Assembly: GCF_000143415.4 (NCBI RefSeq)
Contig: NW_003314337.1
Coordinates: 575,234 to 639,233 of the forward strand
Source of the DNA: Selaginella moellendorffii
Lineage: Eukaryota; Plantae; Lycopodiophyta
Direction of reading: 5' to 3'
DNA length: 64,000 nt
The notes under the pieces were generated by a model, which saw nothing but the letters and a program-made list of their open reading frames with translations, was not told the origin of the DNA and did not search any database. Below are positions 29,207-61,191 of the stretch, piece by piece. The translations under genes were made by a program, and so were the position numbers. Position 1 is the first letter of the stretch. Every line of letters begins with the position of its first letter.

Positions 29207-29239
29207 TTTAGGGTTTAGGGTTTAGGGTTTAGGGTTTAG
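29207..29239 (+). repeat. Interstitial (TTTAGGG)4 telomeric repeat / telobox cluster
   Basis: Four perfect TTTAGGG plus TTTAG, at the same position as in copy 1. Confidence 0.88.
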
Positions 29240-36396: not shown

Positions 36397-36825
36397 GATG
36401 GCATGTATTTATTTAAAAATGTAACTTATTATGGCATGGGGTTCCATGCCATTGTATTAATATTAAAAGACAATTCTTTGAGAGGATTTGCATTTACAGC
36501 ATGTTATTGGAAGTCTACGAAGTTGTTTTATTAATAAGGGGAAAGTAAAGATTGAATGGGGACTTGGGCTCCACCTAGACTCGGAGCAACTGAGCCAATA
36601 TTAAAAGGATGGAAAGAAATTGGACGACGATGACAAGGAGAAGAGAGAGGTGAAGCAGTGGCAGGGGGAGGAGAAGTGATTAAGTAGACATTTCCTTGTT
36701 TAAAATAAAATGGCATGTGCCTCAATGCAGTTGAATTTTGTTATATTTATATACTATATAAAGATTTGGAAACCTTATTTTACAAGTGGGATAATGACAA
36801 TTCCCACTTTAATGAAATAGAGCTT

Positions 36826-39800
36826 CATCGCCTTGGTGTAGATTTTGTACGCTGTGGTGAGCATCGTTATTGGTCTCCAGTTACGCAACTCTTGAAGGTC
36901 CCCTCTCTTTGGAAGTAGTGCGATCTGGCCCTCCAGTATCTCCGCCGGGAGCTGCCCTGCTTGCTGCGCCTTCGTCCAGGCCTCCATCATCAGTGGACCA
37001 ATCACCTCCCAGTTGTTCTGAAAGAATTTCGGGGGCAGTCCATCTACCCCAGGCATTTTGTCATCACTCAATCTGTTCAAGGCCTTGCGGAGATCCTCTA
37101 TGGTGAGATCTGCCACGAGTTGTTTGTTCCATTCCTGTGGGACTCTATGCAGCAGAGTTTTCAACACCTTCTTTGCTGCCTGGGCTCTGGCTGTAGTCCC
37201 TGGTTGTGCTGTGTACAACTGCTCATAGAACCTTTGTGCCAGTTCTTGCATGCCTTGCTGGTCCTCTACCAACTTTCCATCTTCTGCCTTGAGACCAAGA
37301 ATGGGTGGTGAGTCTGAGACTGGGCGGATACCTCTGTAGAAGGCCTTGTTCAGCAGCCGCTCGTTTACAGCAAATAAGTCCTCCTAAGTACGCACTCCGG
37401 AGCTCCAAGCCGCGAATTCCCTCTCCTGTAGTTCTGCTTCCCTCTGATCCAGGGCCGCTTGCCACCTTCCTGCGTCCTTGGCTGTCAGCACCATCCTCTG
37501 AGCTGCTGTCACCTTCTTCCTTGCTAGGCGCAGCTCCTTCATTACTTCGCCCTTTATCGCCCGCTGTCTCTCTCTTAGCTGGTCCGAGCAGCCTTGTAGC
37601 ACTGTGGTGAGCACTAGTTCGCTTCCCTCCAGAATCCGACTAACTTGTGCCGCTGCCTGTGCATCTGCCAGGGTGTGGATTGAGATGGCTCGCTGCACTG
37701 CTTTACCTTTGTCTTTCTGGAGCTTGATTGTACACCGGACTGGGTCGTGGTCCGAAAAAGAGGGGAAACATGGCCACGTCTTGAGACTCCCGCCATCTTT
37801 TCTCACTCTAGGGGAGGCATAGATCCTGTCCAGTTGTGATTGATAGCTTGTTGACTCCCGATGGGTGTAGAGGTGTGCATGGGGGGCGAATCCTTCCTTG
37901 TGCTGCAGGTCTACGAGGTCCAGCTGTTCTGCCAGTGCCAGCCATTGTAGTTGTTCCCGGCCCTGGATGGTCTCTTGGCCTCCTCTCCTGTCCTCTGTGT
38001 TTTCCACCATGTTGAAATCCCCTATCACCAGCCAATGCTCTGCCCGGCCTCTTGTTTTCACTCGAAGTTCTTCCCAGAAAAGGGTCCGAGCCTGTCTATT
38101 GGTTGGGGCGTAGACGTTTAGGATCCCCACTCGTCCAAAGTGCAAGCTGAGCACCAGGAGCTGCGCTCTCCCGGGCACCAACACTTCATGATCCCTCGCT
38201 TGCGCTGACCATCTGGTGGAAACCACAATGGCTGTGCCCCCCCCTAGCCTGGACCGAGCTGCTACCGCTGCGTTCCACCAAGTTTTCCCTCTCATGCCGA
38301 AGTTGTAGTCCGGTTCAGCGTCCATCTTGTGTTCCTGGATGCATAGAAAGTCTATCCCGCCTTCCAGTCCCAACTCCCTTATATGTGACTTGAGTTGGAT
38401 TTTTTTGTTGAGCCTACTGTCCGTGGAACTGAGGCCTCGGCAGTTCCATGTCAAGCACGTTAGGGTCGTCATGGTGCGACATACTTCCAGGAGGACCTGT
38501 TGGTGCTTGGCAGCGCCCTCCACTCTGTGGAGATGGTCCACACTGCCATTGGATTCCCTCGGTGTCTAGCCCAAGAGAATCCCCATACCGTGTACTTTGC
38601 GAATCCTGTCCATTCTATTATCGCTCGCTCCATCCGAGTTTGGTAGTCTCCGAGAGCTACTATCTCTGGGAAAGTCCCACTTCCACGCTGGACCAGCCAA
38701 TCTTCTGCCTCTGACGTTGCCAGCTCTCTCTTCGGGGGAATCCATCGGATCGCCAAATTCACTGTTTTGGGGAGTACTGTCTGGAAGCCTTCCACGCTGG
38801 TTTCCACTGGGGGACCTTCAAAAAGCCTGCTCTTGGAGCCCGAACCTGCTACAGGTGGGGCCATTGGGAACCTGATGTGCGGGGCACAATCTGGATCACG
38901 TTGTAGTAGCACCTTTTCTTCCTCCACTGGAAGCTCGAATGGCCGTTCCAGGGCCAATTTCTCCGTCCTCGCTGTGTATGCCGTCTCCTGGTGGCCCAGC
39001 CTCTGACAGATCCTGCATCTTTTTCCTGTGGTTTCTGTTTGGACCCTGATGTATTGTCCCAATACAGCCAACTCCGTTGGGGTCTCTACTGGAGAGTCTA
39101 CAAAGACTTTTAGCCTGATCGGCCCTAGCACTCCACCAGCTTCCACAGTATCCAGCCCTGAAGCAATATTCCCAATACTGCTTTCCACCAACTCTTTCAC
39201 CACATCCTGTGATCTCATCTCCATCGGGACATCCCAGAGTGCAATATTGAGAGGAAAGCTCCCTCCCTTCAGTCGTGCTTGTTCTTCTGCAGTAAACCTT
39301 GGGACCCAAGGGTGGAAAGACACAGCCCATTGGCTGTCAATCACGCCATGCAGCTCCTCCGCTCGTCTTCTTGCCTCCTCATCCTCGAACACGACTGTGT
39401 AGCACCCTTTACCATGCAGGAGTAGCTTCTGGACCGTGATCCCTTTCTCCAACGATGCGTTGAGCCAATCGATGGCTAGGCGTCCTGTTGGGAAGCTACC
39501 TCGGAAGACCGCAATAGTTGCTTTTAGTTTCAGCTCTGCTTCCTTGGCCGCCACTACTTGCTGCAAGTGGTCCCGCAGCTGCACTGCTTTAGTCCTGCTA
39601 TTGTGCATTACCCTCCCACTGTTGGGGGCCTGCACGTTTGTCTTCGTCTCTAAGCCGTCTCCACTTCCATGCGTGCCCTCCTTGCTGTTCTGTCCTGCAT
39701 CAGCGTCCTGGTCCTTGGGTCCCTCAGGGTCCTTGGACTGGTCCTCTCTCCCACTGTTTCCTCCATCCCTTTCTGCTTGATCTTTGGGGCACTCAGCTTC

Positions 39801-41781
39801 CTCTCTTTCGGACAGGTCTCCTGTTTTCTTTTCGATCACCTTGCCACCCCTCCTGGAGACTTGCTTCTTCTCGTGAACTGGTGAATCCTCTTGCTGTAGG
39901 AATTCTTCCACTGCTTCTGTCCACTCTGTCTTTTCTTGCTCCTTGCTCCACGCCTTCAACTTTCTCCTCGCCGCCTTGCGTTCCTTTTTCTTCTCTATTT
40001 TGTCCTTCTTGCACTCAATCTGGGCCTCTTCTCTCATTTGTTGCATTTCCCTCTTCTGGTCCTCGAGCAGCTCTGTAAGAGGCTTATCTAAGTCTCTACG
40101 CTTCTGCTGCTCCCCTTGGTTGTCTTTCCCCTGTCCGCTTTGGGTGGCCATCCTTTCTTCCAGGTTTAGCGGTTTTGCCTTGTCCAGATTCTTCCTGCTC
40201 TCCATCTCGTCCACAACTAGGTGGAAAGCCTCCTTGTATGCTGGGCCGAGTACTAGGTCCTCCCTGAGTGCATTTGTCTCTTGGTGCCAGATTTCTGCCA
40301 TGAGGATATCCTGGTGTAGGATGAGATCCTCTGAGGAGCTCCTACTAAGCTTCTGCTTGAAGTCCCTCGAGCACCAACGCAGCTCTCCTACGTCGGACAA
40401 GCAAGGCATGCACTCCTGTACGTCAACTATCCTCGTAGGGGGCTTGATCTTTGGTTGAGATCCCACCAATTTAGCGGGAGACTGCAGCTTCGGCTCCTTC
40501 AGTTTATTTGTGAGGTCTGAGAGGCATCTGTGAGCGAACTTGTGACTGAGTGAGACCACAATGTTCCTGTCTCTGATGTTCGCCTGATCCAGTGGCAGGA
40601 CATTGTCCCCTGGTGCATTCTCTCTCCCTTCCTGTTCATTCGGGCTCCTCTGACTTTCCAGGTCGGCCCTTGTCTCTCGTCGCTGGGTGTGTGGTGTTGG
40701 AGAGGGCCCTTGTTCCCCCCTGGGCTCGGTGGTGGGGGACAACGCACTCCCCTGATTATCCTCTTTTCCTGTTTCTGCCCTTGCTCGGCTTGTCTCGCCT
40801 CGCTCACGCGTGCCTCTCCCTTGTTTACGTGGTGTTGTTGTCCGGGAGCCTTCGCCACCTTTCCTCTCCCGATTCGGTGTTACCATTTCCCCTGCCTCTG
40901 GGGCTCTCGAGAGACTCCCCTGAGTTGCGTTTCCCAGCAACTGGAGTTGTTCCACTGGTTCTTTCTCCACTGGAAATATGATGCTTAGCCCCGCACTCTG
41001 CTCTAGTACGCCAAACCTTATGGGACTTCTCGCATCCTCCTCTTTTTCCCATACCTTCTTTGCCAACCTCCCTAGGCTCCTCGTCCACCTGGGGCTTAGC
41101 CTTCCCTCGATCTCGTCCTTCTGCGTTTTTGTTCCCCGAGTGTTTTTAGTGGATTGCGAGTCCTCCTTGTCCCGGCTCGAACCCGACCCTTCGTCTATTC
41201 CAGCTTGGTTAACCTTGCATCTGTCCACCGAACGAACTGAGCTGACTGGGGCACCTCCGACCACTGCTCATGGCTCCCTCGTCTTGGGCCTTCTGGTCGC
41301 AACCATCCCCTTGAGGAGCTTGAGATTCTCTTCTGCCCGGGCCATTGTCTCCTTCGTTTCTCTCTGTATTTCTTCTGTAAGCTCCTCTATCTTTTTCACC
41401 TTCTGCTTCTCACTGTCCAACCCCTGGAGCTGCTCCATCTGCAGGACTCCTCCCTTGGATACATTGCTGCTGAGATCCATATTCGTCTTACCAGGCCCTG
41501 CGCTGCCGTGGCAGCCGAGGGGTTGCTGCTTCGTGCCCATTGGGATTTTGTGGCTTGCTGTTCGTCCTTTGATCAGTCCACCTTGGGGTAGGCGAATACT
41601 GAGACCTCTCCCTCTTGACCCTTGTCCCAGCGTGATGGGCTGCCCTCGAGCTCTTCCTCTGCCTGGCGAATTGATTGGGTCCATCCTGGGCGCAAGAAAA
41701 TGAGACAACACAGAGAACAGAATAGAAAGATCCTTCCCTGGGCCTCACGGCGGATGCCCCTGCCGACGGTGGCAAGTGTGG
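36826..41781 (-). mobile_element. L1/Tx1-like LINE copy A (ORF0, ORF1 and ORF2 N-terminus; 3' part missing at the transposon TIR)
   Basis: Homologous to 45603-50497. ORF2 has CAG>TAG at 37384. Target duplication at its 5' side (41782-41797). Confidence 0.9.
38469..41264 (-). CDS. LINE ORF1 protein, copy A (coiled coil, DUF4283/RRM-like, damaged CCHC knuckle)
   Basis: 931-aa open frame. GKGCYTVVFEDEE...FHPWVPRF; CRICQRLGHQETAY (last Cys lost). Confidence 0.75.
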   Translation of the reverse strand: MVGGAPVSSVRSVDRCKVNQAGIDEGSGSSRDKEDSQSTKNTRGTKTQKDEIEGRLSPRWTRSLGRLAKKVWEKEEDARSPIRFGVLEQSAGLSIIFPVEKEPVEQLQLLGNATQGSLSRAPEAGEMVTPNRERKGGEGSRTTTPRKQGRGTRERGETSRARAETGKEDNQGSALSPTTEPRGEQGPSPTPHTQRRETRADLESQRSPNEQEGRENAPGDNVLPLDQANIRDRNIVVSLSHKFAHRCLSDLTNKLKEPKLQSPAKLVGSQPKIKPPTRIVDVQECMPCLSDVGELRWCSRDFKQKLSRSSSEDLILHQDILMAEIWHQETNALREDLVLGPAYKEAFHLVVDEMESRKNLDKAKPLNLEERMATQSGQGKDNQGEQQKRRDLDKPLTELLEDQKREMQQMREEAQIECKKDKIEKKKERKAARRKLKAWSKEQEKTEWTEAVEEFLQQEDSPVHEKKQVSRRGGKVIEKKTGDLSEREEAECPKDQAERDGGNSGREDQSKDPEGPKDQDADAGQNSKEGTHGSGDGLETKTNVQAPNSGRVMHNSRTKAVQLRDHLQQVVAAKEAELKLKATIAVFRGSFPTGRLAIDWLNASLEKGITVQKLLLHGKGCYTVVFEDEEARRRAEELHGVIDSQWAVSFHPWVPRFTAEEQARLKGGSFPLNIALWDVPMEMRSQDVVKELVESSIGNIASGLDTVEAGGVLGPIRLKVFVDSPVETPTELAVLGQYIRVQTETTGKRCRICQRLGHQETAYTARTEKLALERPFELPVEEEKVLLQRDPDCAPHIRFPMAPPVAGSGSKSRLFEGPPVETSVEGFQTVLPKTVNLAIRWIPPKRELATSEAEDWLVQRGSGTFPEIVALGDYQTRMERAIIEWTGFAKYTVWGFSWARHRGNPMAVWTISTEWRALPSTNRSSWKYVAP

Positions 41782-41797
41782 TAGGTCCCTGGGTCGA

Positions 41798-42607
41798 TGC
41801 AACGTGTATGTACATTTCTCCAAGTCCCTTAGGGACTGATACAAAAAGCAAGAATCCCTTAGTGCTGTTCACTCAACTACGCTGTCCTGCAATTCTCCAC
41901 CTAATAGTGATCGCTGCCCTCCAATCGTGGCTGCTGTGGTCGTCGCCTCCGCAGTGCATCCAGTGCCAGATCGCCACGTCGAGCCTCCTTTGTTACCGTG
42001 TCCGAAGGTCTCCATTTCCACTTGACCTCCCCCTCGTGTTCAGTTCCGTAGCACGGAGTCCATAGTCGTCGCCAAGCTGTGAGTGCCTCCCTGTTTTTCC
42101 CATGTTCCTGGAGCAGCGTATCCCTTAAGCGGATAGCAGCTAGTGTGAGCCTCCACCAGTTCGCCATGATCGCTGAAATCCGAGCGCACTGCCCTTCAAA
42201 GTGGTTGTGGTTCCGAGCCTCCCAGAGTGCCTGTACCCCGGAAGCCCGCCATACCTCCCATCTCGCCCGTCCAAGGGCCTCCCACACTGTAGTCCCAACT
42301 TCGGCGCCTACCGCGTCCCACCTAACTCAGGTGCCCCATCCTGAGCGTCCCCAACACCCGATCTTCCGCCAAGCTGCTCCTGTGCTTGGTCCCCTTGCCT
42401 CTAGAAACCATTGGGTGATATCCCCTTCTCGAATTTCGAACTCCTGCTTGTCCCCTAGTTCCCTCGTCGCTTTTGCTACCTGCCGCCACGTCTCCTTGGC
42501 CACGTCACAATCCCAGAGGAGGTGTGTGACCGTCTCCAGTTCCCCGCATTCCGGACACTTGCGAGCATTCTCCGCTTGAAATCGCTGGCCTACTGGCAGC
42601 CCATTCG
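41798..42607 (-). mobile_element. 5'-truncated LINE copy B
   Basis: 3'-most ~810 bp of the LINE, flanked by GGTCCCTGGGTCGA at 41784-41797 and 42614-42627. CGA>TGA stop at 42327. Confidence 0.92.
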
Positions 42608-42731
42608 AGCCCAGGTCCCTGGGTCGATGCAACGTGTATGTACATTTCTCCAAGTCCCTTAGGGACTGATACAAAAAAGCAAGAATCCCTTAGCGCTGTT
42701 CACTCAACTACGCTGTCCTGCAATTCTCCAC

Positions 42732-45700
42732 CTAGTAGTGATCGCTGCCCTCCAATCGTGGCTGCTGTGGTCGTCGCCTCCTCAGTGCATCCAGCGCCAG
42801 ATCGCCACGTCGAGCCTCCTTTGTTACCGTGTCCGAAGGTCTCCATTTCCACTTGACCTCCCCCTCGTGTTCAGTTCCGTAGCACGGAGTCCATAGTCGT
42901 CGCCAAGCTGTGAGTGCCTCCCTGTTTTTCCCATGCTCCTGGAGCAGCGTATCCCTCAAGCGGATAGCAGCTAGCGTGAGCCTCCACCAATTCGCCATGA
43001 TCTCTGAAATCCGAGCGCACTGTCCTTCGAAGTGGCTGCGGTTCCGAGCCTCCCAGAGTGCCTGTACCCCGGAAGCCCGCCATACCTCCCATCTCGCCCG
43101 TCCAAGGGCCTCCCACACTGTAGTCCCAACTTCGGCGCCTACCGCGTCCCACCTAACTCGGGTGCCCCATCCTGAGCGTCCCCAACACCCGATCTTCCGC
43201 CAAGCTGCTCCTGTGCTTGGTCCCCTTGCCTCTAGAAACCATTGGGTGACATCCCCTTCTCGAATTTCGAACTCCTGCTTGACCCCTAGTTCCCTCGTCG
43301 CTTTTGCTACCTGCCGCCACGTCTCCTTGGCCACGTCACAATCCCAGAGGAGGTGTGTGACCGTCTCCAGTTCCCTGCATTCCGGACACTTGCGAGCATT
43401 CTCCGCTTGAAATCGCTGGCCTACTGGCAGCCCATTCGTCGCCACGAGCCAAGAGGTTACCTTTGATTTTTCCTGGATCGGTTGTTTCCAGAACGCCACG
43501 GTATTGTCAATCACCTGGTCCGCCTCCACTCCTAGCGCGATCCACTTTTGCCACAGTCGTGGGATTTCTTCTCTCTCAAATTCTCTGTTCACCATCAAAC
43601 CGTTCCGCGCATCCTTGACCTCGTAGGTGAAGAAGCTGTTCGCCCCGCGTCTCCACGCTGCTGGGTCCCAGTCCAGGTCTTCTATTAGCTCTTTCCTCCA
43701 CCATATTAGCCGTCCCTCTCCTTCTAGCCAGCATGGTGACTCTACCACTTCTGTCCGAGTTGCTGTCTGTCTTAGAACCCGGATTCGTCCTTTCACTTCA
43801 TCGTCCGTGACCTGCGGCATCTGTTGGGGATTCCCCACCTCGAGGAGTGTGTCGCCTCTCACTACACGAAAGGGCCTACCGAGGTTCTGGTCTGGGTCCG
43901 TCACAAACCACACCTCGATCTCCCCCTCATTCCACGCTGGGGTTGGCATCGTGAATGCCCGAGTCCATTTCCCAAGTGGTACTTGCTCGCCGTCCGACGT
44001 TTCCTCCCTTTGAATTGCCACAAAGTCCCCAGCGTGTAGTCTTCTTTCTGGCCATTTATCCACTGTCCGTGCCTCTGTCACAGCCCGCATTAGCTTCAGT
44101 AGATCCCACTTCACGTCCCGCCACTTCCCTGGCCCGAAAACTTGGAAGCGCCGGGACGATTTCTGTGGATCCGGATCTACCACTCCAACTAGTTGTTTGA
44201 CTGTCCTGAAGCCTCCTTGGTGTACCCGCCTCCATATGGTGTAGTGGTTCTCTCGACCTAGTGTCCTGTCTCCTGCCTTGAACAACTCATTGAAAAAAAG
44301 CGGCTGGTTCAGCCAGTCCTCTGCCCTGTTTGGGATGACCTGCGTCACTGGAAATGACTTCCAGAGCCGATGGAGACCCTGGACCAACTGGCCTCCCCCT
44401 ACCACCTGTGTTTGGCCCTCCGCAAACATCCAGCGGGGGTCCTCATCCCACACTCTTGCGAATCCGTGCTTCGGCCTAATGGCTAGCATGCTCTGCCTGA
44501 ACAAGAGCTTCCAAACTTGGGCCCCCGGTTGAAGGCCCATTAGAATGACTTTGTACCTCAGCGCCTTGCTCATGTCACTTGGGTCGATTATCCCCAAGCC
44601 GCCTAGAACTCGTGGTCTCGCCGTCGACTGCCATGCCACCTTGGCCATCGTCCGGCCACTGACCAGCGCTCCCTTCCACACATACATGCGCACCATGGAC
44701 CTTATGTGCTTGAGTGTTGTCTCTAGAACCGGCCATACTGAGAGGTGGTACCACGTACTCGGCAACACGATGCTTTTCGCCACCACCACCCTTGCCGGCA
44801 GTCCCAGTTTCCGTGGCGCCCATTTCTGAATCGCAGTTCTGGTCCTCCGCAGCAGCGCTGAGTCCTGCGTAGAAGCTTTGAACTCACCTCCTACCTGAAT
44901 TCCCAGGTAGCGTGTGTCCTCCCTTGGTGGTAGCCACTGGAAGTCGATGTCGCGTCCCCACGCCTCTATGTCAGATTCCCCCCAGTTGATTCCTATTGAC
45001 TTGTTCCAGTTGATGGCCGCTCCTGCTGCTGCATTGAAGGCCTCTAGCCTGGCCCTTGCAGTGTCCAGGTTGGCCTTGGTACCTAGCAGAAAGAGTGCTG
45101 TATCATCCGCGAACGCGCTGTCGAGCAGGTCCCTTCCCACCGTTTGAGTTCCTGGGAGTTGCTGTCTTTCCTTGGGTAACTCCACGCCCCTGATTCCTTC
45201 ACCCTCCGCCAGGAACGCCCCTAGAGCCTCCGCAACCATGAGGAAGAGGTACGGAGCCAACGGGCAGCCTTGACGCACCGACCTCCCTAGCCGAAACCGC
45301 GGGCCTGTTTCTCCATTGATGACCACCCTGCTTGATGCTCCCCGGTACAAGAGAGCGATGCGTGTTACCATGGGTGCTGGGATTCCTATCCGTCCCATGC
45401 AGTCCTCCAGGAAGTCCCAGTCCACCCGGTCGTACGCCTTCTCGAAATCCAGTAGCCACGCCACCACATTCTGCCTCGAGGATTTTGCCCATCTTTGTGC
45501 CAGGAGATAGGTCCAGATATTCTCCGCAATCTGTCTCCCTGGTACAAAGCCTGTCTGTTGTTCTCGAATAATGATGGGCATCACCGGTTGCAATTTAAGC
45601 GCCATCGCCTTGGCGTAGATTTTGTACGCTGTGTTGAGCATTGTTATTGGTCTCCAGTTGCGTAGCTCTTGAAGGTCCCCTCTCTTTGGAAGCAGTGCGA

Positions 45701-47249
45701 TCTGGCCCTCCAGTATCTCCGCCGGGAGCTGCCCTGCTTGCTGCGCCTTCGTCCAGGCCTCCATCATCAGCGGACCAATCACCTCCCAGTTCCTCTGAAA
45801 GAAACTCGGGGGCAGTCCATCTATCCCGGGCATTTTGTCATCACTCAATCTGTCCAAGGCCTTGCGGAGGTCTTCTATGGTGAGATCTGCCATGAGTTGT
45901 TTGTTCCATTCCTGCGGGACTCTATGCTTCAGAGTTTTCAACACCTTTTTTGCTGCCTGGGCTCTGGCTGTAGTCCCTGGTTGTGCTGTGTACAGCTGCT
46001 CGTAGAACCTTTGTGCCAGTTCCTGCATGCCTTGCTGATCCTCCACCAACTTTCCATCTTCTGCCTTGAGACCAAGAATGGGTGGTGAGTCTGAGACTGG
46101 GCGGATACCTCTGTAGAAGGCTCTGTTCAGCAGCCGCTCGTTTACCGCCCATGAGTCCTCCTGAGTACGCACTCCGGAGCTCCACGCCGCGAATTCCCTC
46201 TCCTGTAGTTCTGCTTCCCTCTGGTCCAGGGCCGCTTGCCACCTTCCTGCGTCCTTGGCCGTCAGCACCATCCTCTGGGCTGCTGCCACCTTCTGCCTTG
46301 CTAGGCGCAGCTCCTTCATTACTTCGCCCTTTATCGCCCGCTGTCTCTCTCTCAGCTGGTCCGAGCAGCCTTGCAGTACTGTGGTGAGCACCAGTTCGCT
46401 CCCCTCCAGAATCCGACTGACTTGTGCCACTGCCTGTGCATCTGCCAGGGTGTGGATTGAGATGGCTCGCTGCACTGCTTTACCTTTGTCCTTCTGGAGC
46501 TTGATTGTACACCGGACTGGGTCGTGGTCCGAAAAAGAGGGGAAACACGGCCACGTTTTGAGACTCCCGCCATCTTTTCTCACTCTAGGGGAGGCGTAGA
46601 TCCTGTCCAGTCGTGACTGACAGCTTGTTGACTCCCGACGGGTGTAGGGGTGCGCATGGGGGGCGAATCCTTCCTCGTGCTGCAGGTCCACGAGGTCCAG
46701 CTGTTCTGCCAGTGCCAGCCATTGTAGTTGTTCCCGGCCCTGGATGGTCTCTTGGCCTCCTCTCCTGTCCTCTGTGTTTTCCACCATGTTGAAATCCCCT
46801 ATCACCAGCCAATGCTCTGCCCGGCCTCTTGCTTTCACTCGAAGTTCTTCCCAGAAAAGGGTCCGGGCCTGTCTGTTGGTTGGGGCGTAAACGTTTAGGA
46901 TCCCCACTCGTCCAAAGTGCAGGCTGAGCACCAGGAGCTGTGCTCTCCCCGGCACCAACACTTCATGATCCCTCGCTTGCGCTGACCATCTGGTGGAGAC
47001 CACAATGGCTGTGCCCCCCCCTAGCCTGGACCGAGCTGCTACCGCTGCGTTCCACCACGTTTTCCCTCTCATGCCGAAGTTGTAGTCCGGTTCAGCGTCC
47101 ATCTTGTGTTCCTGGATGCATAGAAAGTCTATCCCGCCTTCCAGTCCCAACTCCCTTATATGCGACTTGAGTTGGATTTTTTTGTGAAGCCTGTTGTCCG
47201 TGGAACTGAGGCCTCGGCAGTTCCATGTCAAGCACGTTAAGGTTGTCAT
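42732..47249 (-). CDS. LINE ORF2: APE endonuclease, reverse transcriptase, C-terminal CCHC (zf-RVT), 1505 aa
   Basis: TWNCRGL, CIQEHK, NVYAP, GDFN, SRLDRIY, SDHDPV; WRPITMLNTAYKI, LDFEKAYDRV, RQGCPLAPYLF, FADD, YLG; CPEC...HLLWDC. The ATG overlaps the ORF1 stop. Confidence 0.95.
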   Translation of the reverse strand: MTTLTCLTWNCRGLSSTDNRLHKKIQLKSHIRELGLEGGIDFLCIQEHKMDAEPDYNFGMRGKTWWNAAVAARSRLGGGTAIVVSTRWSAQARDHEVLVPGRAQLLVLSLHFGRVGILNVYAPTNRQARTLFWEELRVKARGRAEHWLVIGDFNMVENTEDRRGGQETIQGREQLQWLALAEQLDLVDLQHEEGFAPHAHPYTRRESTSCQSRLDRIYASPRVRKDGGSLKTWPCFPSFSDHDPVRCTIKLQKDKGKAVQRAISIHTLADAQAVAQVSRILEGSELVLTTVLQGCSDQLRERQRAIKGEVMKELRLARQKVAAAQRMVLTAKDAGRWQAALDQREAELQEREFAAWSSGVRTQEDSWAVNERLLNRAFYRGIRPVSDSPPILGLKAEDGKLVEDQQGMQELAQRFYEQLYTAQPGTTARAQAAKKVLKTLKHRVPQEWNKQLMADLTIEDLRKALDRLSDDKMPGIDGLPPSFFQRNWEVIGPLMMEAWTKAQQAGQLPAEILEGQIALLPKRGDLQELRNWRPITMLNTAYKIYAKAMALKLQPVMPIIIREQQTGFVPGRQIAENIWTYLLAQRWAKSSRQNVVAWLLDFEKAYDRVDWDFLEDCMGRIGIPAPMVTRIALLYRGASSRVVINGETGPRFRLGRSVRQGCPLAPYLFLMVAEALGAFLAEGEGIRGVELPKERQQLPGTQTVGRDLLDSAFADDTALFLLGTKANLDTARARLEAFNAAAGAAINWNKSIGINWGESDIEAWGRDIDFQWLPPREDTRYLGIQVGGEFKASTQDSALLRRTRTAIQKWAPRKLGLPARVVVAKSIVLPSTWYHLSVWPVLETTLKHIRSMVRMYVWKGALVSGRTMAKVAWQSTARPRVLGGLGIIDPSDMSKALRYKVILMGLQPGAQVWKLLFRQSMLAIRPKHGFARVWDEDPRWMFAEGQTQVVGGGQLVQGLHRLWKSFPVTQVIPNRAEDWLNQPLFFNELFKAGDRTLGRENHYTIWRRVHQGGFRTVKQLVGVVDPDPQKSSRRFQVFGPGKWRDVKWDLLKLMRAVTEARTVDKWPERRLHAGDFVAIQREETSDGEQVPLGKWTRAFTMPTPAWNEGEIEVWFVTDPDQNLGRPFRVVRGDTLLEVGNPQQMPQVTDDEVKGRIRVLRQTATRTEVVESPCWLEGEGRLIWWRKELIEDLDWDPAAWRRGANSFFTYEVKDARNGLMVNREFEREEIPRLWQKWIALGVEADQVIDNTVAFWKQPIQEKSKVTSWLVATNGLPVGQRFQAENARKCPECRELETVTHLLWDCDVAKETWRQVAKATRELGVKQEFEIREGDVTQWFLEARGPSTGAAWRKIGCWGRSGWGTRVRWDAVGAEVGTTVWEALGRARWEVWRASGVQALWEARNRSHFEGQCARISEIMANWWRLTLAAIRLRDTLLQEHGKNREALTAWRRLWTPCYGTEHEGEVKWKWRPSDTVTKEARRGDLALDALRRRRPQQPRLEGSDHY

Positions 47250-49981
47250 GGTGCGACATACCTCCAGGAGAACCTGTTGGTGCTCGGCTGTGCCCTCCAT
47301 TCTGTGGAGACGGTCCACACTGCCGTTGGCTTCCCTCGGTGTCTGGCCCAAGAGAATCCCCGTACCGTGTATTTTGTGAATCCTGTCCACTCTGTTATCG
47401 CCCGCTCCATCCGAGTTTGGTAGTCTCCGAGAGCTACTATCTCTGGGAAAGTCCCATTTCCACGCTGGACCAGCCAGTCCCCTGCCTCTGACGTTGCCAG
47501 CTCTCTCTTCGGGGGAATCCATCGGATCGCCAAGTTCACTGTTTTGGGGAGTACTGTCTGGAAGCCTTCCACGCTGGTTTCCACTGGGGGACCTTCAAAA
47601 AGCCTGCTCTTAGAGCCCGAGCCTGCTACAGGTGGGGCCATTGGGAACCTGATGTGCGGGGCACACGCTGGTTCACGTTGTAGTAGCACTTTTTCTTCCT
47701 CCACTGGAAGCTCGAATGGCCGTTCCAGGGCCAATTTCTCTGTCCTCGCTGTGCACGCTGTCTCCTGGTGGCCCAGCCTCTGACAGATCCTACATCTTTT
47801 CCCTGTGGTTTCTGTTTGGACCCTGATATATTGTCCCAATACAGCCAACTCCGTTGGGGTCTCTGCTGGAGAGTCTACAAAGACTTTTAGCCTGATCGGC
47901 CCTAGCACTCCGCCAGCTTCCACCGTATCTAGCCCTGAAGCAATATTCCCAATACTGCTTTCCACCACCTCTTTGATCACGTCCTGTGATCTCATCTCCA
48001 TCGGGACATCCCAGAGTGCAATATTGAGAGGAAAGCTCCCTCCCTTCAGTCGTGCTTGTTCTTCTGCAGTAAACCTTGGGACCCAGGGGTGGAAAGACAC
48101 AGCCCATTGGCTGTCAATCACTCCATGCAGCTCCTCCGCCCGTCTTCTTGCCTCCTCATCCTCGAACACGACTGTGTAGCACCCTTTACCATGCGGGAGT
48201 AGCTTCTGGACCGTGATCCCTTTCTCCAGCGATGCGTTGAGCCAGTCAATGGCTAGGCGTCCTGTTGGAAAGCTACCTCGGAAGACCGCGATAGTTGCTT
48301 TTAGTTTCAGTTCAGCTTCCTTAGCTGCCACTACTTGCTGCAAGTGTTTCCGCAGCTGCACTGCTTTAGTCCTGTTATTATGTATTACCCTCTCACTGTT
48401 GGGGACCTGTACGTTTGTCTTCATCTCTAAACCGTCTCCGCTTCCATGCGTGTCCTCCTTGCTGTTCTGTCCTGCGTCAGCGTCCTGGTCCTTGGGTCCC
48501 TCAGGGTCCTTGGACTGGACCTCTCTCCCACCGTTTCCTCCATCTCTTTCTGCTTGATCTTTGGGGCACTCAGCTTCCTCTCTTTCAGACTGATCTCCTG
48601 TTTTCTTTTCGATCGCCTTGCCACCTTTCCTGGAGACTTGCTTCTTCTCGTGAACTGGTGACTCCTCTTGTTGTAGGAATTCTTCCACTGCTTCTGTCCA
48701 CTCTGTCCTCTCTTGCTCCTTGCTCCACGCTTTCAACTTTCTCCTCGCCGCCTTGCGTTCCTTTTTCTTCTCCGTTTTGTTCTTCTTGCTCTCGTTCTGG
48801 GCCTCTTCTCTCATTTGCTGCATTTCCCTCTCCTGGTCCTCGAGCAGCTCTGTAAGAGGCTTATCTAAGTCTCTACGCGTCTGTTGCTCCCCTTGGGTGT
48901 CTTTCCCCTGTCCGCTTCGGGTGGCCATCCTTTCTTCCAGGTTTATCGGTTTTGCCTTGTCCAGATTCTTCCTGCTCTCCATCTCATCCGCGACTAGGTG
49001 GAAAGCCTCCCTGTATGCTGGGCCGAGTACTAGGTCCTCCCCGAGTACGTTTGTCTCTTGGTGCCAGATCTCTGCCATGAGGATATCCTGGTGTAGGATG
49101 AGATCTTCTTTGGAGCTCCTACTAAGCTTCAGCTTGAAGTCCCTCGGACTCCAACGCAGCTCTCCTGCATCAGTCAAGCATGGCATGCACTCCTGCACGT
49201 CAACTGTCCTCGTATGAGACTTGATCTTTGGTTGAGATCCCACCGATTTAGCGGGAGACTGCATCACCGGCTCCTTCAGTCTGTTTGTGAGGTCTGAGAG
49301 GCACCTATGTGCGAACTTGTGGCTGAGTGAGACCACAATGCTCCTGTCTCTGATATTCGCTCGATCCAGTGGCAGGGCATTGTCTCCTAGGACATTCTCC
49401 CTCCCTTCCTGCTCGTCTGGGCCTCTCTGCGTTTCAAGGACATCCCTTGTCTCCTGTCTCGGGGTGTATGATGTTGGAGAGGGCTCTCGTTCCTCCCTAG
49501 GCTCAGTGGTGGGGGACACCGTGCTCCCTTGATTGTCCTCTTTTCCTGTTACTGCTCTTGCTTGGCTTGTCTCGCCTCGCTCGCGAGTGTCTCTCCCTTG
49601 CTTGCGTGGTGTTGTTGTCCGGGAACCTTCGCCACCTTTCATCTCCCGGTTCGGTGTTGCCATTTCTCCTACTTCTGAGGCTCCCAAGTGACTCCTCAGA
49701 GTTGCAGTTCCCAGCAGCTGGTGCTGCTCCACTGGTTCCTTGTCCACTGGAATTCCGAGGCTTAGCCCCGCACTCTGCTCTAGTGCACCCAACCTTATGG
49801 GACCACTCACATCCTCCTCCTTTGCCCATACCTTTTTTGCCAGCCTCCCTAGGCTCCTTGTCCACCTGGGGCTCACCCTTCCCTCAGCCGTGTCCTCCTG
49901 TGTTTCTTCGTCTACTCCAACTTGGTTAACCTTGCATCTGTCCATTGATCGAACTGAGCTGGCTGGGGCGCCTCCTACCAC
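47246..49981 (-). CDS. LINE ORF1 protein, copy C (start uncertain)
   Basis: 911-aa open frame with a charged coiled coil, a DUF4283/RRM-like region and the zinc knuckle CRICQRLGHQETAC. Confidence 0.85.
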   Translation of the reverse strand: MVGGAPASSVRSMDRCKVNQVGVDEETQEDTAEGRVSPRWTRSLGRLAKKVWAKEEDVSGPIRLGALEQSAGLSLGIPVDKEPVEQHQLLGTATLRSHLGASEVGEMATPNREMKGGEGSRTTTPRKQGRDTRERGETSQARAVTGKEDNQGSTVSPTTEPREEREPSPTSYTPRQETRDVLETQRGPDEQEGRENVLGDNALPLDRANIRDRSIVVSLSHKFAHRCLSDLTNRLKEPVMQSPAKSVGSQPKIKSHTRTVDVQECMPCLTDAGELRWSPRDFKLKLSRSSKEDLILHQDILMAEIWHQETNVLGEDLVLGPAYREAFHLVADEMESRKNLDKAKPINLEERMATRSGQGKDTQGEQQTRRDLDKPLTELLEDQEREMQQMREEAQNESKKNKTEKKKERKAARRKLKAWSKEQERTEWTEAVEEFLQQEESPVHEKKQVSRKGGKAIEKKTGDQSEREEAECPKDQAERDGGNGGREVQSKDPEGPKDQDADAGQNSKEDTHGSGDGLEMKTNVQVPNSERVIHNNRTKAVQLRKHLQQVVAAKEAELKLKATIAVFRGSFPTGRLAIDWLNASLEKGITVQKLLPHGKGCYTVVFEDEEARRRAEELHGVIDSQWAVSFHPWVPRFTAEEQARLKGGSFPLNIALWDVPMEMRSQDVIKEVVESSIGNIASGLDTVEAGGVLGPIRLKVFVDSPAETPTELAVLGQYIRVQTETTGKRCRICQRLGHQETACTARTEKLALERPFELPVEEEKVLLQREPACAPHIRFPMAPPVAGSGSKSRLFEGPPVETSVEGFQTVLPKTVNLAIRWIPPKRELATSEAGDWLVQRGNGTFPEIVALGDYQTRMERAITEWTGFTKYTVRGFSWARHRGKPTAVWTVSTEWRAQPSTNRFSWRYVAP

Positions 49982-49984
49982 TTC

Positions 49985-50401
49985 TCAAGACTCCCTCATC
50001 TTGGGTGTGCTGGCCACTACCATTTCCTTAAGGAGCTTGAGATTTTCTTCTGCCCGGGCCATCGTCTCCTTAGTTCCTCTCTGTATTTCCTCTGCGAGAT
50101 CTTCTATCTTTTTCGCCTTCTGCTTCTCACTGTCCAGCCCCTGAGACTGCTCCGTCTGTGGGACTCCTCTGTTGGATTCGTTGCTGCTGGGATCCAAGTT
50201 CATCTTACCAGGCCCTGTGTTGTCGTGGCAGCCGAGGGGTGGCTGCTTCGTGCCCATTGGGGTCTTGTGGCTTGCTGCTCGTCCTTTGATCAGTCCACCT
50301 TGGGGTAGGCGAATGCTGAGGCCTCTCCCTCTTGTCCCTCGTCCCAGCGTGATGGGCTGCCCTCGAGCTCTTCCTCTGCTCGGTGATTTGTTTGGGTCCA
50401 T
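49985..50401 (-). CDS. LINE upstream ORF (ORF0, 138 aa), in frame with ORF1 across a single TGA
   Basis: The ATG, the 417-nt length and the TGA are all conserved in copy A (41268-41684). Confidence 0.55.
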   Translation of the reverse strand: MDPNKSPSRGRARGQPITLGRGTRGRGLSIRLPQGGLIKGRAASHKTPMGTKQPPLGCHDNTGPGKMNLDPSSNESNRGVPQTEQSQGLDSEKQKAKKIEDLAEEIQRGTKETMARAEENLKLLKEMVVASTPKMRES

Positions 50402-50639
50402 CCTGGGCGCAAGAAAATGAGACAACACAGAGATCAGAATAGAGAGCTTCTTCCCTGAGTCTCGCGGCGGATGCCCCCGCCGACGGTAGCAAGTGTGGGG
50501 AGATTGGGCGCTCTCCCCTTGGCGCTCTTCTACCTCTGACTGCTCCTCCGGTCACGGCAGCCATGGTGCTGGACGCTGCGCCCCTTTCCGCCCTAAAACA
50601 CCAATCATTTTTTTAGGTCCCTTCAGGTCCCTGGGTCGA

Positions 50640-51846
50640 TGCAACGTGTATGTACATTTCTCCAAGTCCCTTAGGGACTGATACAAAAAAGCAAGAATCC
50701 CTTAGCGCTGTTCACTCAACTACGCTGTCCTGCAATTCTCCACCTAGTAGTGATCGCTGCCCTCCAATCGTGGCTGCTGTGGTCGTCGCCTCCTCAGTGC
50801 ATCCAGCGCCAGATCGCCACGTCGAGCCTCCTTTGTTACCGTGTCCGAAGGTCTCCATTTCCACTTGACCTCCCCCTCGTGTTCAGTTCCGTAGCACGGA
50901 GTCCATAGTCGTCGCCAAGCTGTGAGTGCCTCCCTGTTTTTCCCATGCTCCTGGAGCAGCGTATCCCTCAAGCGGATAGCAGCTAGCGTGAGCCTCCACC
51001 AATTCGCCATGATCTCTGAAATCCGAGCGCACTGTCCTTCGAAGTGGCTGCGGTTCCGAGCCTCCCAGAGTGCCTGTACCCCGGAAGCCCGCCATACCTC
51101 CCATCTCGCCCGTCCAAGGGCCTCCCACACTGTAGTCCCAACTTCGGCGCCTACCGCGTCCCACCTAACTCGGGTGCCCCATCCTGAGCGTCCCCAACAC
51201 CCGATCTTCCGCCAAGCTGCTCCTGTGCTTGGTCCCCTTGCCTCTAGAAACCATTGGGTGACATCCCCTTCTCGAATTTCGAACTCCTGCTTGACCCCTA
51301 GTTCCCTCGTCGCTTTTGCTACCTGCCGCCACGTCTCCTTGGCCACGTCACAATCCCAGAGGAGGTGTGTGACCGTCTCCAGTTCCCTGCATTCCGGACA
51401 CTTGCGAGCATTCTCCGCTTGAAATCGCTGGCCTACTGGCAGCCCATTCGTCGCCACGAGCCAAGAGGTTACCTTTGATTTTTCCTGGATCGGTTGTTTC
51501 CAGAACGCCACGGTATTGTCAATCACCTGGTCCGCCTCCACTCCTAGCGCGATCCACTTTTGCCACAGTCGTGGGATTTCTTCTCTCTCAAATTCTCTGT
51601 TCACCATCAAACCGTTCCGCGCATCCTTGACCTCGTAGGTGAAGAAGCTGTTCGCCCCGCGTCTCCACGCTGCTGGGTCCCAGTCCAGGTCTTCTATTAG
51701 CTCTTTCCTCCACCATATTAGCCGTCCCTCTCCTTCTAGCCAGCATGGTGACTCTACCACTTCTGTCCGAGTTGCTGTCTGTCTTAGAACCCGGATTCGT
51801 CCTTTCACTTCATCGTCCGTGACCTGCGGCATCTGTTGGGGATTCC
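50640..51846 (-). mobile_element. 5'-truncated LINE copy D
   Basis: Translation identical to the C-terminus of copy C ORF2. TSDs at 50626-50639 and 51848-51861. Confidence 0.93.
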
Positions 51847-51847
51847 T

Positions 51848-51886
51848 GGTCCCTGGGTCGAGACCCACCCGGAGCCACCTCTTTTT
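51848..51886 (+). ncRNA. 3' half of an interrupted tRNA-like Pol III unit (B-box, 3' stem strand, T5 terminator)
   Basis: GGTCCCTGGGTCGAGACCCACCCGGAGCCACCTC-TTTTT. GGGTCGAGACCC resembles the B-box GGTTCGANNCC. Confidence 0.5.
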
Positions 51887-52530
51887 GGCAAAATTTGAGT
51901 AGTGGAGGGAATATTCTTGGAATAATAGAGAGCACGAGCTTTGGGGGCCGTTTTAGACCCGTGCGTGCATTTCACATGGGACTAACGCCGTTGGGTTCGT
52001 GTTCATGGGGGGCACCCTCCCCAGTGCCAGGAGGTGCAAGGACCTCCCGAGGTTTGCCCCTTTCGCCCAGCAGTTGCAAGGGTTTGCCGTTTTCGACAAG
52101 GCACGCATGGTGCCAGAATGGCATGGGGGGCCCAGCCAATTCGGATTGATGGCCTCGACGCAGGCTTCACCACAGCACTCCTGGGGTCGCGTTCCAGTGC
52201 AGGCCCGAGCACCAGTGCGGTGTTTTCCTTGAGAGTGAGATGCGCTCCCGGCGGCAGCCCACGCATGGGGCCCACGGTCCGTTGGCATGGCTGCGACCGG
52301 GGCGTCACGCCGGCTGGCCCCGCTGGTGCTGGAGCGCGAGTGGGCACACGGATTGCCACGTGGGATGCATCTTCTCCCATGGGAAAAACCGCAAAAGCAG
52401 GCACTCAGGACATGGAAAAATGTACTTGGCCACACGGGCCAGTTGCACGCACCGCCCCGGTCGCTCCCATGCGCCCAAGAGCGAAAGGGGGCCCACGGTC
52501 CACGAGATATGGCAACGGGAACGACACAGA

Positions 52531-52818
52531 ACCCATTGCACTGGTGCGGGACGGTGGGGCAACAAAATCAGGATCCGTTTCTGTGGAAACGGGTGGATTC
52601 ACGCGAGCTTTCCAACAGTTCAAGTCCCATCGCGAACCAAGCTACAGATGCTGCCCACTTGCGCAAAAATGCAGTGTCAAACCCATCGCAATGGTGCGGG
52701 CCGGTGGAGCAACGAAATCCAGATCCGTTTCTGTGGAAACAGGTGGATTCACGCAAGCTTTCCAACGGTTCAGGTCCCATCACAAACCGAGCCACGGATC
52801 TTGCCCACTCGCGCAAAA
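52531..52818 (+). repeat. Two diverged tandem subrepeats, period 150 bp
   Basis: ACCCATTGCACTGGTGCGGG... at 52531 recurs as ACCCATCGCAATGGTGCGGG... at 52681, and both end GCGCAAAA. Confidence 0.85.
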
Positions 52819-53030
52819 CCCATATCCAGACCCTAGCCCTAGCCACGTGTCACGGGGACCGCCAGTCAAACTCATCCCCGCCGGTCAACCACCCCACCGC
52901 ACCAACGGCCGCGATTGCCCCGCTTAACCCCCACTTAATCGCACTAAGCGCACCCCATAATCGCCCTTTGGTAGTTAAACCCCCTCCCATAAACCCAATA
53001 AATTTAACTGACACGAAAAAATGTAACGGA

Positions 53031-53102
53031 GGGGTGGTAGAGGCCTAGTGGCAGAGACCCCCAATGTAAAAACAAGTCCACACAAATAGGTCCCTGGGTC
53101 GA
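53031..53102 (+). ncRNA. 5' half of an interrupted tRNA-like Pol III unit (5' stem strand, A-box, start of B-box)
   Basis: GGGGTGGT, then AGGCCTAGTGG (A-box-like TGGCNNAGTGG), ending in the LINE target GGTCCCTGGGTCGA. Confidence 0.5.
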
Positions 53103-54559
53103 TGCAACATGTATGTACATTTCTCCAAGTCCCTTAGGGACTGGTACAAAAAACAAGAATTCCTTAGCGCTGTTCACTCAACTACGCTGTCCTGCAATTC
53201 TCCACCTAATAGTGATCTCTACCCTCCAATCGTGGCTGCTGTGGTCGTCGCCTCCGCAGTGCATCCAGTGCCAGATTGCCACGTCGAGCCTCCTTTGTTA
53301 CCGTGTCCGAAGGTCTCCATTTCCACTTGACCTCCCCCTCGTGTTCAGTTCCGTAGCATGGAGTCCATAGTCGTCGCCAAGCTGTGAGCGCCTCCCTGTT
53401 TTTCCCATGCTCCTGGAGCAGCGTATCCCTGAAGCGGATAGCAGCCAGTGTGAGCCTCCACCAATTCGCCATGATCGCTGAAATCCGAGTGCACTGCCCT
53501 TCGAAGTGGTTGCAGTTCTGAGCCTCCCAGAGTGCCTGTACCCCGGAAGCCCGCCATACCTCCCATCTCGCCCGTCCAAGGGCCTCCCACACTGTGGTCC
53601 CAACTTCGGCTCCTACCGCGTCCCACCTAACTCGAGTGCCCCATCCTGAGCGTCCCCAACACCTGATCTTCCGCCAAGCTGCTCCTGTGCATGGTCCCCT
53701 TGCCTCTGGAAACCATTGGGTGACATCCCCTTCTCGAATTTCGAAATCCTTCTTGTCCCCTAGTTCCCTCGTCGCTTTTGCTACCTGCCGCCACATCTCC
53801 TTGGCCACGTCACAATCCCAGAGGAGGTGTGTGACCGTCTCCAGTTCCCCGCATTCCGAACACCTGCAAGCACTCTCCGCTTGGAACCGCTGGCCTACTG
53901 GCAGCCCATTCGTCGCCACGAGCCAAGAGGTTACCTTTGATTTTTCCTGGATCGGTAGTTTCCAGAACACCACGGTGTTGTCAATCACCTGGTCCACCTC
54001 CACTCCTAGCGCGATCCACTTTTGCAACAGTCGTGGGATTTCTTCTCTCTCAAACTCCCTGCTCACCATCAAACCGTTCCGCGCATCCTTGACCTCGTAA
54101 GTGAAGAAGCCATTCGCTGCTGGGTCCCAGTCCAGGTCTTCTATTAACTCTTTCCTCCACCATACTAGCCGTCCATCTCCTTCTAGCCAGCATGGTGACT
54201 CTACCACTTCTGTCCAAGTTGCTGTCTGTCTTAGAACCCGGATTCGTCCTTTCACTTCATCGTCCGTGACCTGCGGCATCTGTTGGGGACCCCCCGCCTC
54301 AAGGAGTGTGTCACCTCTCACTACACGAAGAGGCCTGCCAAGGTTTTGGTCTGGGTCTGTCACAAACCACACCTCAATCTCCCCCTCATTCCACGCTGGG
54401 GTTGGCATCGTGAACGCCCGAGTCCATTTCCCAAGTGGTAACTGCTCGCCGTCCGACGTCTCCTCCCTTTGAATTGCCACAAAGTCCCCAGCATGTAGCC
54501 TTCTTGTTGGCCATTTATCCCTTGTCCGTGCCTCTATCACTGCCCGCAGTAGCTTCAGT
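53103..54559 (-). mobile_element. 3' fragment of LINE copy E (more diverged), ending at a G19 run
   Basis: Same 3' terminus next to the target at 53089-53102. No second TSD at 54560. Confidence 0.9.
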
Positions 54560-56189
54560 GGGGGGGGGGGGGGGGGGGCTGCAGGGGGTTCCAAAAGTAT
54601 AGTAGGGATAGTGAAGTCCAGGAACTAGTCTTGAAGGAACTCTCTAGTGGTGCTTCCAAACTAACTTGAGGTTGAGACTGGGGCCGAGGGGCCTTGGGTG
54701 AGAGTGAGCATGGACTCAGGTGGTGTTGGAGGGGCCACCCAAGGAAGTGCTCAAGAGTAGATCCCACTCCCAAAAGAGAAACCGACTGCGGTGCTTCCGG
54801 CTCATGTGGAGTGGTGCCCCACTTGAGTACCTTGCGGCTTAGACGAGGTAAGCTGGCAAATTGGAAAGGAAAAATTTGTGGCTTACAATTTGCTTCAGGG
54901 GCCACAAAATTGGCTGGAAATGACATTGCTCACACTATGATTCATGGGTGCTAATCTGGGATGGAGGCGGTGGATATGAGACATGCAAGCTCTAGAGAAT
55001 GGGGTCAACAAGTGGAAAGGTGCTCCACTCTTGCTAAAGACCATCTAAACAATCCAATAGCAACAGCCTTGACAACTGGCTTCTTTGTCCTCAGATGGAT
55101 GAAGGAGACATCAAGGACAAGGGATTCTCTCTCTAAAATTCCTCTCTCATATAAGCAATGGAATTGTTGCAGGTAGCCCCCACTGAAGGCTATACCTATA
55201 GCATGCTCACATACATGATGGTTTTGGAGAGACCACTTAGAGTTCAGCTTCTAAAGTTCCTCTCCTCAAGTCTCACATTGTCCACAAATGTAAAAACATT
55301 TCTCCTTTCTTGACAGCATCCAGATGGTAGAAAGCTTGTCTCAACTTCAAAATCAAGCTCAAGTGTTGAGCTGAGGTGAAATAAAACTTTCTCTTTCATG
55401 TTTCTTTTTCTAAACTTCTGCTGCCAAGCCAAGATTCCTTGATATTTCATTATTCATGATGATCCTACCAGTGGACTAGAAGAAGGCAATATACAGGTAG
55501 TAGAGAAAGAAACAGGATTTCTCCTTGATTGTTCTTTTAAACCACTTTGAACTGAGCCAGGATGATGAGAACTTGTGTTTGGCTTGGATCGTCTCCTTGA
55601 GATTTTTTGAACAGATTTGCTTCTCCAGTACTATTTTTTATTTCATTCTTACTAGGTGCAAGAAACATATTGGTCCAACAGTGCTACATGACAAGAAGCC
55701 TAGACCCTAGAGCCCTTGTTGGCCCAGCAGAGCTAGCACCACCAGGGCATTGCCATCTTTTGACAGCTCCTGTATTTACCACCTTGCCCTAGCATATCAA
55801 ACATGTGAGGAGGAAAATGACACAGTCTTTGGATTCTTGTACGTTGGCATATTTAATTCTTCATTAAACAAAGCTAAAGTAAATTCCATTAGAAGTTTAA
55901 TACAGCTACAATGCAGACGAGGAGCATGTGATTGAGCCTTCAACATTCAATGGTCCCTTCTACAAATGGGCTTGCAAAGAATCAACATTGAGTGGCCTTC
56001 CAAACCCTTGGAATATAAATACAACCGTATAAAACCCTAAGAATATTCTTCTAGGATCCAAAATATATATTAAAAGAAATAGCTCTGTAGCAGATGATCA
56101 CTTTGCTCATGCCTTCAAAACCTTCAAGTGAGTGCTGATTGCATGACAAGCATCATCACTCCTGCTGATACTAAAGTGAGTAACAACAT

Positions 56190-59492: not shown

Positions 59493-59982
59493 TGTGAGAC
59501 ACAAAATCCCTAGGCCCCAAAGTGGAGCCGGAAGGGTGCCATGTGGTGGTGGCCGAAGCGAAAACCAAACGAGCGTAATACGTTTGGACTAAAAGCTCCA
59601 ACTTGAAAGGTCAAGAGCGGGAGTGGAACTCCCAACAAAGTGCTTGAGGAACGAGCACGAAGCGAGCAATAAGCGAGGCTCCAAAAAGGGACCCAAAAAG
59701 GACCAACACATGACACGTGGAAGTGTCCGAGATGGACCCAAGTTGGAGTTCGAGGTGGAGTCCAAGGTGGATCCGAGATGGAGTCCGAGATGGATCCAAG
59801 ATTGAGTCCGAGACGGACCCAAGATGGAGTCCGAGATGGAGTCCGAGATGGACCCGAGATGGAGTCCGAGATGGAGTCCAAGATAAACCCGAAGTCGAGA
59901 CCGAGACTGAGACCGAGAACAGGACCGAGACCGAGACCGAGACCGGGACCAAGACCGAAACCGAGACCGGGACCGAGACCGG

Positions 59983-60017
<35 letters not shown>

Positions 60018-61186: not shown

Positions 61187-61191
61187 CTCAG

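Follow-up and report, generated by a model that had tools for sequence, protein, structure and literature searches.

Why should several copies of one long interspersed nuclear element (LINE) lie at a single short sequence, and does that sequence belong to the host or to the element? The question is raised by a 64-kb stretch of the genome of the lycophyte Selaginella moellendorffii (contig NW_003314337.1), hereafter the window, in which we studied five copies of one LINE family, A to E, all on the minus strand. Our preferred answer, to which we give a probability of about 0.8, is that the family is a sequence-specific LINE of the L1 type, with an apurinic/apyrimidinic endonuclease (APE), which inserts antisense into an orphan tRNA-like cassette of the RNA polymerase III (Pol III) kind, at one bond inside box B.

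The copies were delimited by blastn within the window, the query being copy C, which is full length (42628-50625, 7,998 bp); tblastn found no LINE copy in the window beyond these five. Since the elements lie on the minus strand, the low coordinate of each is its 3' end. Copy A (36826-41781) retains the 5' 4.96 kb, comprising open reading frame (ORF) 1 and the first ~660 codons of ORF2; its 3' part is missing, and it adjoins other DNA at 36825. It corresponds to positions 45603-50498 of C, aligned by blastn in two pieces of 93% and 88% identity, and, in an alignment of its 5' end with that of C, starts ~125 nt inside the 5' untranslated region (UTR) of C. Its ORF1 is open over 931 amino acids (aa) and has a weak DUF4283 match. 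Copy B (41798-42613) is a 5'-truncated and decayed 3' fragment of 0.8 kb, 97.8% identical to C over the blastn span 41798-42607. Copy D (50640-51846), a 5'-truncated 3' fragment of 1.2 kb with an open ORF2 remnant, is 100% identical to C both over a 1221-nt blastn alignment, which includes the adjoining 14-mer described below, and over 366 aa in tblastn. Copy E (53103-54559) is a 3' fragment of 1.46 kb, 93.8% identical to C by blastn, and its ORF2 remnant is open over 455 aa (90.8% identity to C by tblastn). As to the broken end of A, the break at 36825/36826 coincides with the right end of a 12.7-kb element with terminal inverted repeats (TIR) at 24131-36825; the missing 3' 3 kb of A is absent beyond this element, so that the arrangement is not a simple insertion into A.

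All of these copies are associated with the 14-mer GGTCCCTGGGTCGA, which has five exact matches in the window, at 41784, 42614, 50626, 51848 and 53089, all on the plus strand (five against 0.54 expected; a count of five or more was reached in none of 100 shuffles). The LINE 3' terminus, which reads TGCAACGTGTATGTAC... on the plus strand, begins at 41798, 42628, 50640 and 53103, each time directly after ...GGGTCGA. The stretch shared at the junctions is 16 nt long between A and B (TA plus the 14-mer, 41782-41797), 15 nt between B and C (the motif at 42614-42627 and the preceding A), 15 nt between C and D (the motif proper at 50626-50639) and 14 nt at the 5' junction of D, all on the plus strand. 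The 16-nt version is identical to the native target at the site of copy E (53087-53102, plus strand), which is preceded by the native left flank ...CACAAA; the extra duplicated bases match the native TA. The fifth motif (51848-51861) stands at the truncated 5' end of D, from which it is separated by one extra T, and is followed by non-LINE DNA. An earlier note on this DNA, made from the letters alone, had claimed that four 3' junctions fall exactly after GGGTCGA, that the 5' junctions carry duplications of 14-16 nt, and that the motif at 51848 has no element following it; all three statements are borne out by the junctions given here, with duplications of 16, 15, 15 and 14 nt at A, B, C and D, respectively.

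Whether the 14-mer is a host target or the tail of the element is best judged at the two ends of the non-LINE unit that lies between two occupied targets (51862-53088, 1,227 bp; motif-to-motif distance 1,241 bp). No LINE 3' end adjoins the motif at 51848, which is at a 5' junction; here (51847-51886, plus strand: the extra T, the target copy, then the native right flank) the sequence GGGTCGAGACC at 51855-51865 matches the Pol III B-box consensus at 10 of 11 positions and crosses the insertion point, which lies between 51861 and 51862. A T5 terminator, five T residues at 51882-51886, starts 16 nt after this B-box-like sequence. At the other occupied site, that of E, an A-box-like sequence AGGCCTAGTGG (53041-53051, plus strand; again a 10/11 match) lies 37 nt left of the motif. 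As a null test, random left and right flanks from the window were paired 2,000,000 times: a B box was formed across the join in 2,488 pairings, a B box together with an A box at the right distance in 51, and the whole layout including the T run in 10. Because the layout of B box, T run and A box arises in only 10 of 2,000,000 random pairings, we read the two flanks as the halves of one putative tRNA-gene-like cassette, the motif being their common part. The target is larger than the 14-mer, which makes up only a part of it; the native flank beyond the 14-16-mer, in the sense orientation, reads ...TATTTGTGTGG. The view that the 14-mer is host sequence, and not just the tail of the element, had been advanced from the letters before and is supported by the motif at 51848 and the cassette layout, as far as this window goes.

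The strongest of the competing explanations is that the 14-16-mer is after all the tail of the element, the stack being the product of a single event in which the reverse transcriptase (RT) jumped between templates, leaving one LINE RNA for the 3' end of another, with 51848 as a 14-nt stub of a further jump and with insertion sites that are otherwise unspecific. It would account for the motif at every 3' end, as expected of a terminal sequence, for the 9-nt piece AGGGACCTA found in the sense orientation at the 5' end of C, and for the lack of a 5' duplication at E. However, it requires a copy at 51848 that consists of 14 nt only, and it leaves to chance that the motif and a non-LINE flank together make a B box and a terminator, with an A box at the right distance elsewhere. 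Nor would a single event be expected to produce copies that differ in decay, A and B having stop codons that C and D lack. We consider this explanation unlikely.

The differences in decay also bear on the order in which the copies arrived under the sequence-specific insertion that we favor. Copy A has three stops in its part of ORF2 and B one premature stop in the ORF2 frame, whereas the frames of C and D contain none. When E is used to polarize the changes, all eight private changes of B are transitions, and the ten of the C lineage are mixed. This supports the interpretation that the left copies are older and the right ones younger, in the order A, B, C, D; the 100% identity of D to C is consistent with D, the rightmost, being the youngest. 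It likewise supports sequential insertion into whichever motif copy kept the native right flank, and suggests that site recognition would need sequence right of the nick; alternatively, any motif copy may be hit. The claims that A-D form a head-to-tail stack by regeneration of the target on the right, and that D is the youngest and matches the full-length C, had both been made in the earlier note; the former agrees with the junctions and the order of decay, and the latter with the identity over 1221 nt.

Copies B, C/D and E are regarded as products of separate retrotranspositions because they differ in sequence and in their truncation points. The number of independent events at the same bond can be safely put, from the sequences, at no fewer than four, that is at least four (A and E counted together, B, C, and D). 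The 5' end of C adds a separate observation: in the sense orientation it reads TGA-AGGGACCTA-AAAAAAATG... (50603-50625), directly after the duplicated motif, and AGGGACCTA repeats the final 9 nt of the 16-nt form of the target. The parent of C may have followed a 16-nt duplication within which its transcription began, a 5' transduction of the target; this, if true, would imply a further insertion at the same site.

Could a single old insertion have been multiplied by recombination instead, the stack and E arising by unequal crossing-over, tandem duplication and deletion in a repeat array? In favor of this, the locus is in repetitive DNA, A and E cover separate parts of the element at a similar divergence from C, and D reproduces a part of C exactly. 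Yet B, D and E end at three different internal points, B and D beside the motif and E at a run of 23 G residues (G23), and shared exact 3' ends combined with differing 5' truncations are the pattern of retrotransposition rather than of recombination. Furthermore, D lies 6.8 kb of C away from its matching part and so is not a simple tandem duplicate, and 14 nt is too short for homologous exchange. We regard this scenario as very unlikely. Still less credible is an assembly artefact, in which the C/D identity or the whole stack would come from collapsed or mis-joined repeats: the perfect identity of D and the G23 run at the E junction might be taken that way, but the junctions are each different and internally consistent, and B and E differ from C.

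Several observations weigh against site-specific insertion into a Pol III cassette, and they should be stated together. The cassette is not a recognized tRNA gene, as ARAGORN called no tRNA, either across the window or at the rejoined site, and it has no Rfam match. Within this window, the only stretch examined, neither an empty target site nor a genomic copy of the family beyond the five was seen. Copy E has no 5' duplication; its 5' side runs into G23 (54560-54582) and then unrelated DNA, and the right half of the cassette is missing there; a deletion or rearrangement may be the cause, or else a fault of the assembly. Few characters underlie the age order. Finally, A and E share no part of the element and their divergence from C is about equal, so that they could represent one old insertion duplicated with the repeat unit, and this would also fit the broken 5' side of E.

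Several searches around the target gave negative results. Neither half of the cassette recurs in the window, nor does the 1.2-kb unit between the occupied targets, and a search of metagenome contigs for the filled junction gave 0 matches. The rejoined empty site had 12 matches in metagenomes, which were rejected as chance hits, being in GC-rich contigs with unrelated, bacterial-looking flanks. The idea that an inserted element is the cause of the missing 5' duplication of E was dropped as well, since only a 34-nt similarity was found. Inside the 1.2-kb unit we observed a 150-bp tandem duplication (52530-52818, 86% identity), each copy of which holds GTCCCATC(G/A), resembling the upstream sequence element of plant small nuclear RNA (snRNA) genes.

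What kind of protein could find such a site is indicated by the coding capacity of copy C. Its ORF1 extends from the ATG at 49945 to 47246 (899 aa, within the frame 49981-47246) and its ORF2 from 47249 to 42732 (1505 aa from ATG), with a 5' UTR at 49946-50625 and a 3' UTR at 42628-42731. The TGA of ORF1 overlaps the ATG of ORF2 as ATGA (47246-47249 of the window), which suggests translation of ORF2 by termination-reinitiation. ORF1 contains one CCHC knuckle, at aa 730, and its DUF4283 match is weak (19.4 bits against a cut-off of 27.2 bits). In the frame 47522-42732, of 1596 codons, Pfam detects Exo_endo_phos (E 2e-16), RVT_1 (E 7e-26) and zf-RVT (E 3e-9). ORF2 was aligned with the human L1 ORF2p (8uw3) over the endonuclease (EN) and RT domains (E 3e-52), its first residues matching the start of the human endonuclease; the catalytic N, E, Y, D-N, D and D-H of the human L1 EN are all aligned, and the RT motif FADD and a C-terminal CCHC region are present. 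The earlier suggestion that the element is apparently intact thus agrees with the open frames and catalytic residues of C. The sequence points to an intact and young copy with apparent recent activity, since the open frames of C are accompanied by a truncated copy, D, that is 100% identical to it.

The 3' end is unusual for a plant L1 element. All four 3' ends stop at ...CACGTTGCA without an A run, and so lack the poly(A) tail of plant L1 elements; of the nearest relatives with poly(A), P0002 and P0003, one ends in A11 and the other in A23, unlike copy C. A hairpin, AGUCCCUAAGGGACU, is predicted in the 3' UTR and may be a recognition element for the RT, whereas the fold of the whole 136-nt stretch that contains it is unexceptional (z = -1.75). 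As a side observation, the hairpin (window 42650-42670, plus strand AAGTCCCTTAGGGACT) and the target (AGGTCCCTGGGTCGA) have GTCCCT in common; this may be due to chance, or it may hint at a protein that reads a similar motif in RNA and DNA.

The relatives of the element are found among plant LINEs. In a search with a piece of the RT the nearest named protein was S. moellendorffii LOC112341605 (74% identity over the RT), whereas with the full RT region within the long ORF2 the best protein matches reached only 45% identity; a protein search with the 374-aa C-terminal ORF of copy D gave no matches. The next relatives, at 40-45% identity, are environmental LINEs of the plant type, and the named best matches come from Selaginella, Cryptomeria, Adiantum, Riccia, Chara and Closterium. 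The locus of LOC112341605 (L015; GL377652.1, GCA_000143415.2, 9821-12771) holds a fragment of a sister LINE family with ~71% nucleotide identity, which is cut at both ends, has AT-rich surroundings without the motif, and is uninformative on targeting. Judged by its sequence, this annotated gene is a LINE fragment and not a host gene.

An RT tree was built from streptophyte and environmental sequences plus one turtle protein, which forms a long branch; its backbone is weakly supported. In this tree the element and LOC112341605 are joined with 100/100 support on a long stem, next to a clade of fern and environmental sequences, among streptophyte LINEs. The best match of the element among solved structures, by sequence, is the human L1 ORF2p and not the R1 or TRAS endonucleases. 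The element thus groups, by its RT, with streptophyte LINEs of the plant L1 type; nothing places it in the Tx1 clade, the tree being one without Tx1 sequences.

Taken with the junctions, these features fit the following mechanism. Judging from target-primed reverse transcription by APE LINEs, the ORF2 protein (ORF2p) would nick the plus strand, which is the sense strand of the cassette, between TCGA and GACC, and the 3' OH at the nick would prime cDNA synthesis at the RNA end ...CACGUUGCA. Because this sequence of 14-16 nt follows every copy, we propose that positioning is probably achieved by pairing of the 14-16 nt, which lie just upstream of the nick, with their complement in a read-through RNA, as described for R1-type elements; the predicted 3'-UTR hairpin may also contribute. 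A second-strand cut 14-16 nt upstream would then duplicate the motif. The motif copy with the native right flank would constitute a full target again, so that later insertions would stack there head to tail and the rightmost copy would be the youngest; the order A, B, C, D is expected because the duplication regenerates the site on that side. A stronger version of this model, in which C is active now or was so very recently, its endonuclease is strictly specific for box B, and this specificity arose in a plant L1 independently of the Tx1 and R1 clades, is offered tentatively, as we lean slightly against it.

Two further features of the window lie apart from the LINE copies. At 21988-22026, on the minus strand, there are two perfect matches to the B-box consensus GGTTCGAGTCC, separated by 28 nt, and the GC skew of the stretch is strongly negative; ARAGORN found no tRNA at 21988-22026, and the stretch may be another tRNA-derived repeat. 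In addition, a repeat family with minisatellite arrays of 12 nt and 23 nt occurs in both orientations at 59484-61193, 63442-63911, 15.1-20.5 kb and 111-1251.

The significance of the locus depends on how it compares with what has been described. Sequence-specific APE LINEs are standard examples from animals (R1, TRAS/SART and the Tx1 clade), and the literature covered yielded such elements from animals only, with none from any plant and nothing on Selaginella; the kind of element is known, and its host kingdom, lineage and target are new relative to that literature. If our interpretation is true, a plant L1 without poly(A) homes to one bond of a Pol III box B, and this lifestyle has evolved repeatedly; the family would also be a natural experiment on how an APE endonuclease gains specificity. 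Proteins of site-specific retroelements have already been used for transgene insertion at multicopy safe-harbor loci, as in the R2-based PRINT (PMC11371274). For comparable insertion work in plants, a candidate is offered by an intact plant element whose site is defined at 14-16 bp; if the stronger version of the model holds, it would provide the first usable plant-derived system for RNA-templated site-specific insertion, with a multicopy and apparently dispensable landing site.

Among known systems, the Dictyostelium elements TRE5 and TRE3 and the Dada transposons resemble the Selaginella LINE in that their landing sites are tRNA genes or other genes of the Pol III kind. Through Pol III factors, TRE insertions are directed to positions some way upstream or downstream of tRNA genes, rather than to one particular nucleotide of box B. 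Dada elements, whose landing sites are of this sort (PMC3706591), are DNA transposons, unlike the Selaginella LINE.

The R1 clade (R1 of the 28S rDNA, TRAS and SART of telomeric repeats) shares with the element described here an APE endonuclease and precise 3' junctions. APE endonucleases of this clade nick sequence-specifically. The R1-type elements differ from the Selaginella LINE in belonging to another clade, found in insects. In this clade, co-transcription of the target or read-through into it aids exact priming (PMC4494074, PMC7265360).

Closest in lifestyle are LINEs of the Tx1 clade (Tx1L, Keno, Mutsu, Dewa, Kibi and Koshi), which, like the family studied here, are of the APE type within the L1 group and have two ORFs and one defined target. 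They occupy one sequence of multicopy small-RNA genes or repeats, in tandem in the target array; the targets are the U2 snRNA genes for Keno, the 5S rRNA genes for Mutsu and the spacer of a tRNA-Leu repeat for Dewa (PMC4494074, PMC3706591, PMC4640811). Kojima (2015) described the Tx1 clade as an animal group (PMC4494074), and most reported target-specific families belong to the Tx1 and R1 clades plus early-branched groups (PMC4640811). Unlike the Tx1 elements, the Selaginella LINE has as its target box B of an orphan tRNA-like cassette, and its RT falls among those of streptophyte L1 elements. With plant L1 elements (BNR, Ta11, Karma, Cin4) it shares the make-up of its proteins, namely a putative, weakly matching DUF4283/RRM-like region and a CCHC knuckle in ORF1, and APE, RT and zf-RVT domains in ORF2. 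Ordinary plant L1 elements, however, have poly(A) ends and are dispersed, whereas the Selaginella LINE has no poly(A) and all five of its copies in the window are at one sequence.

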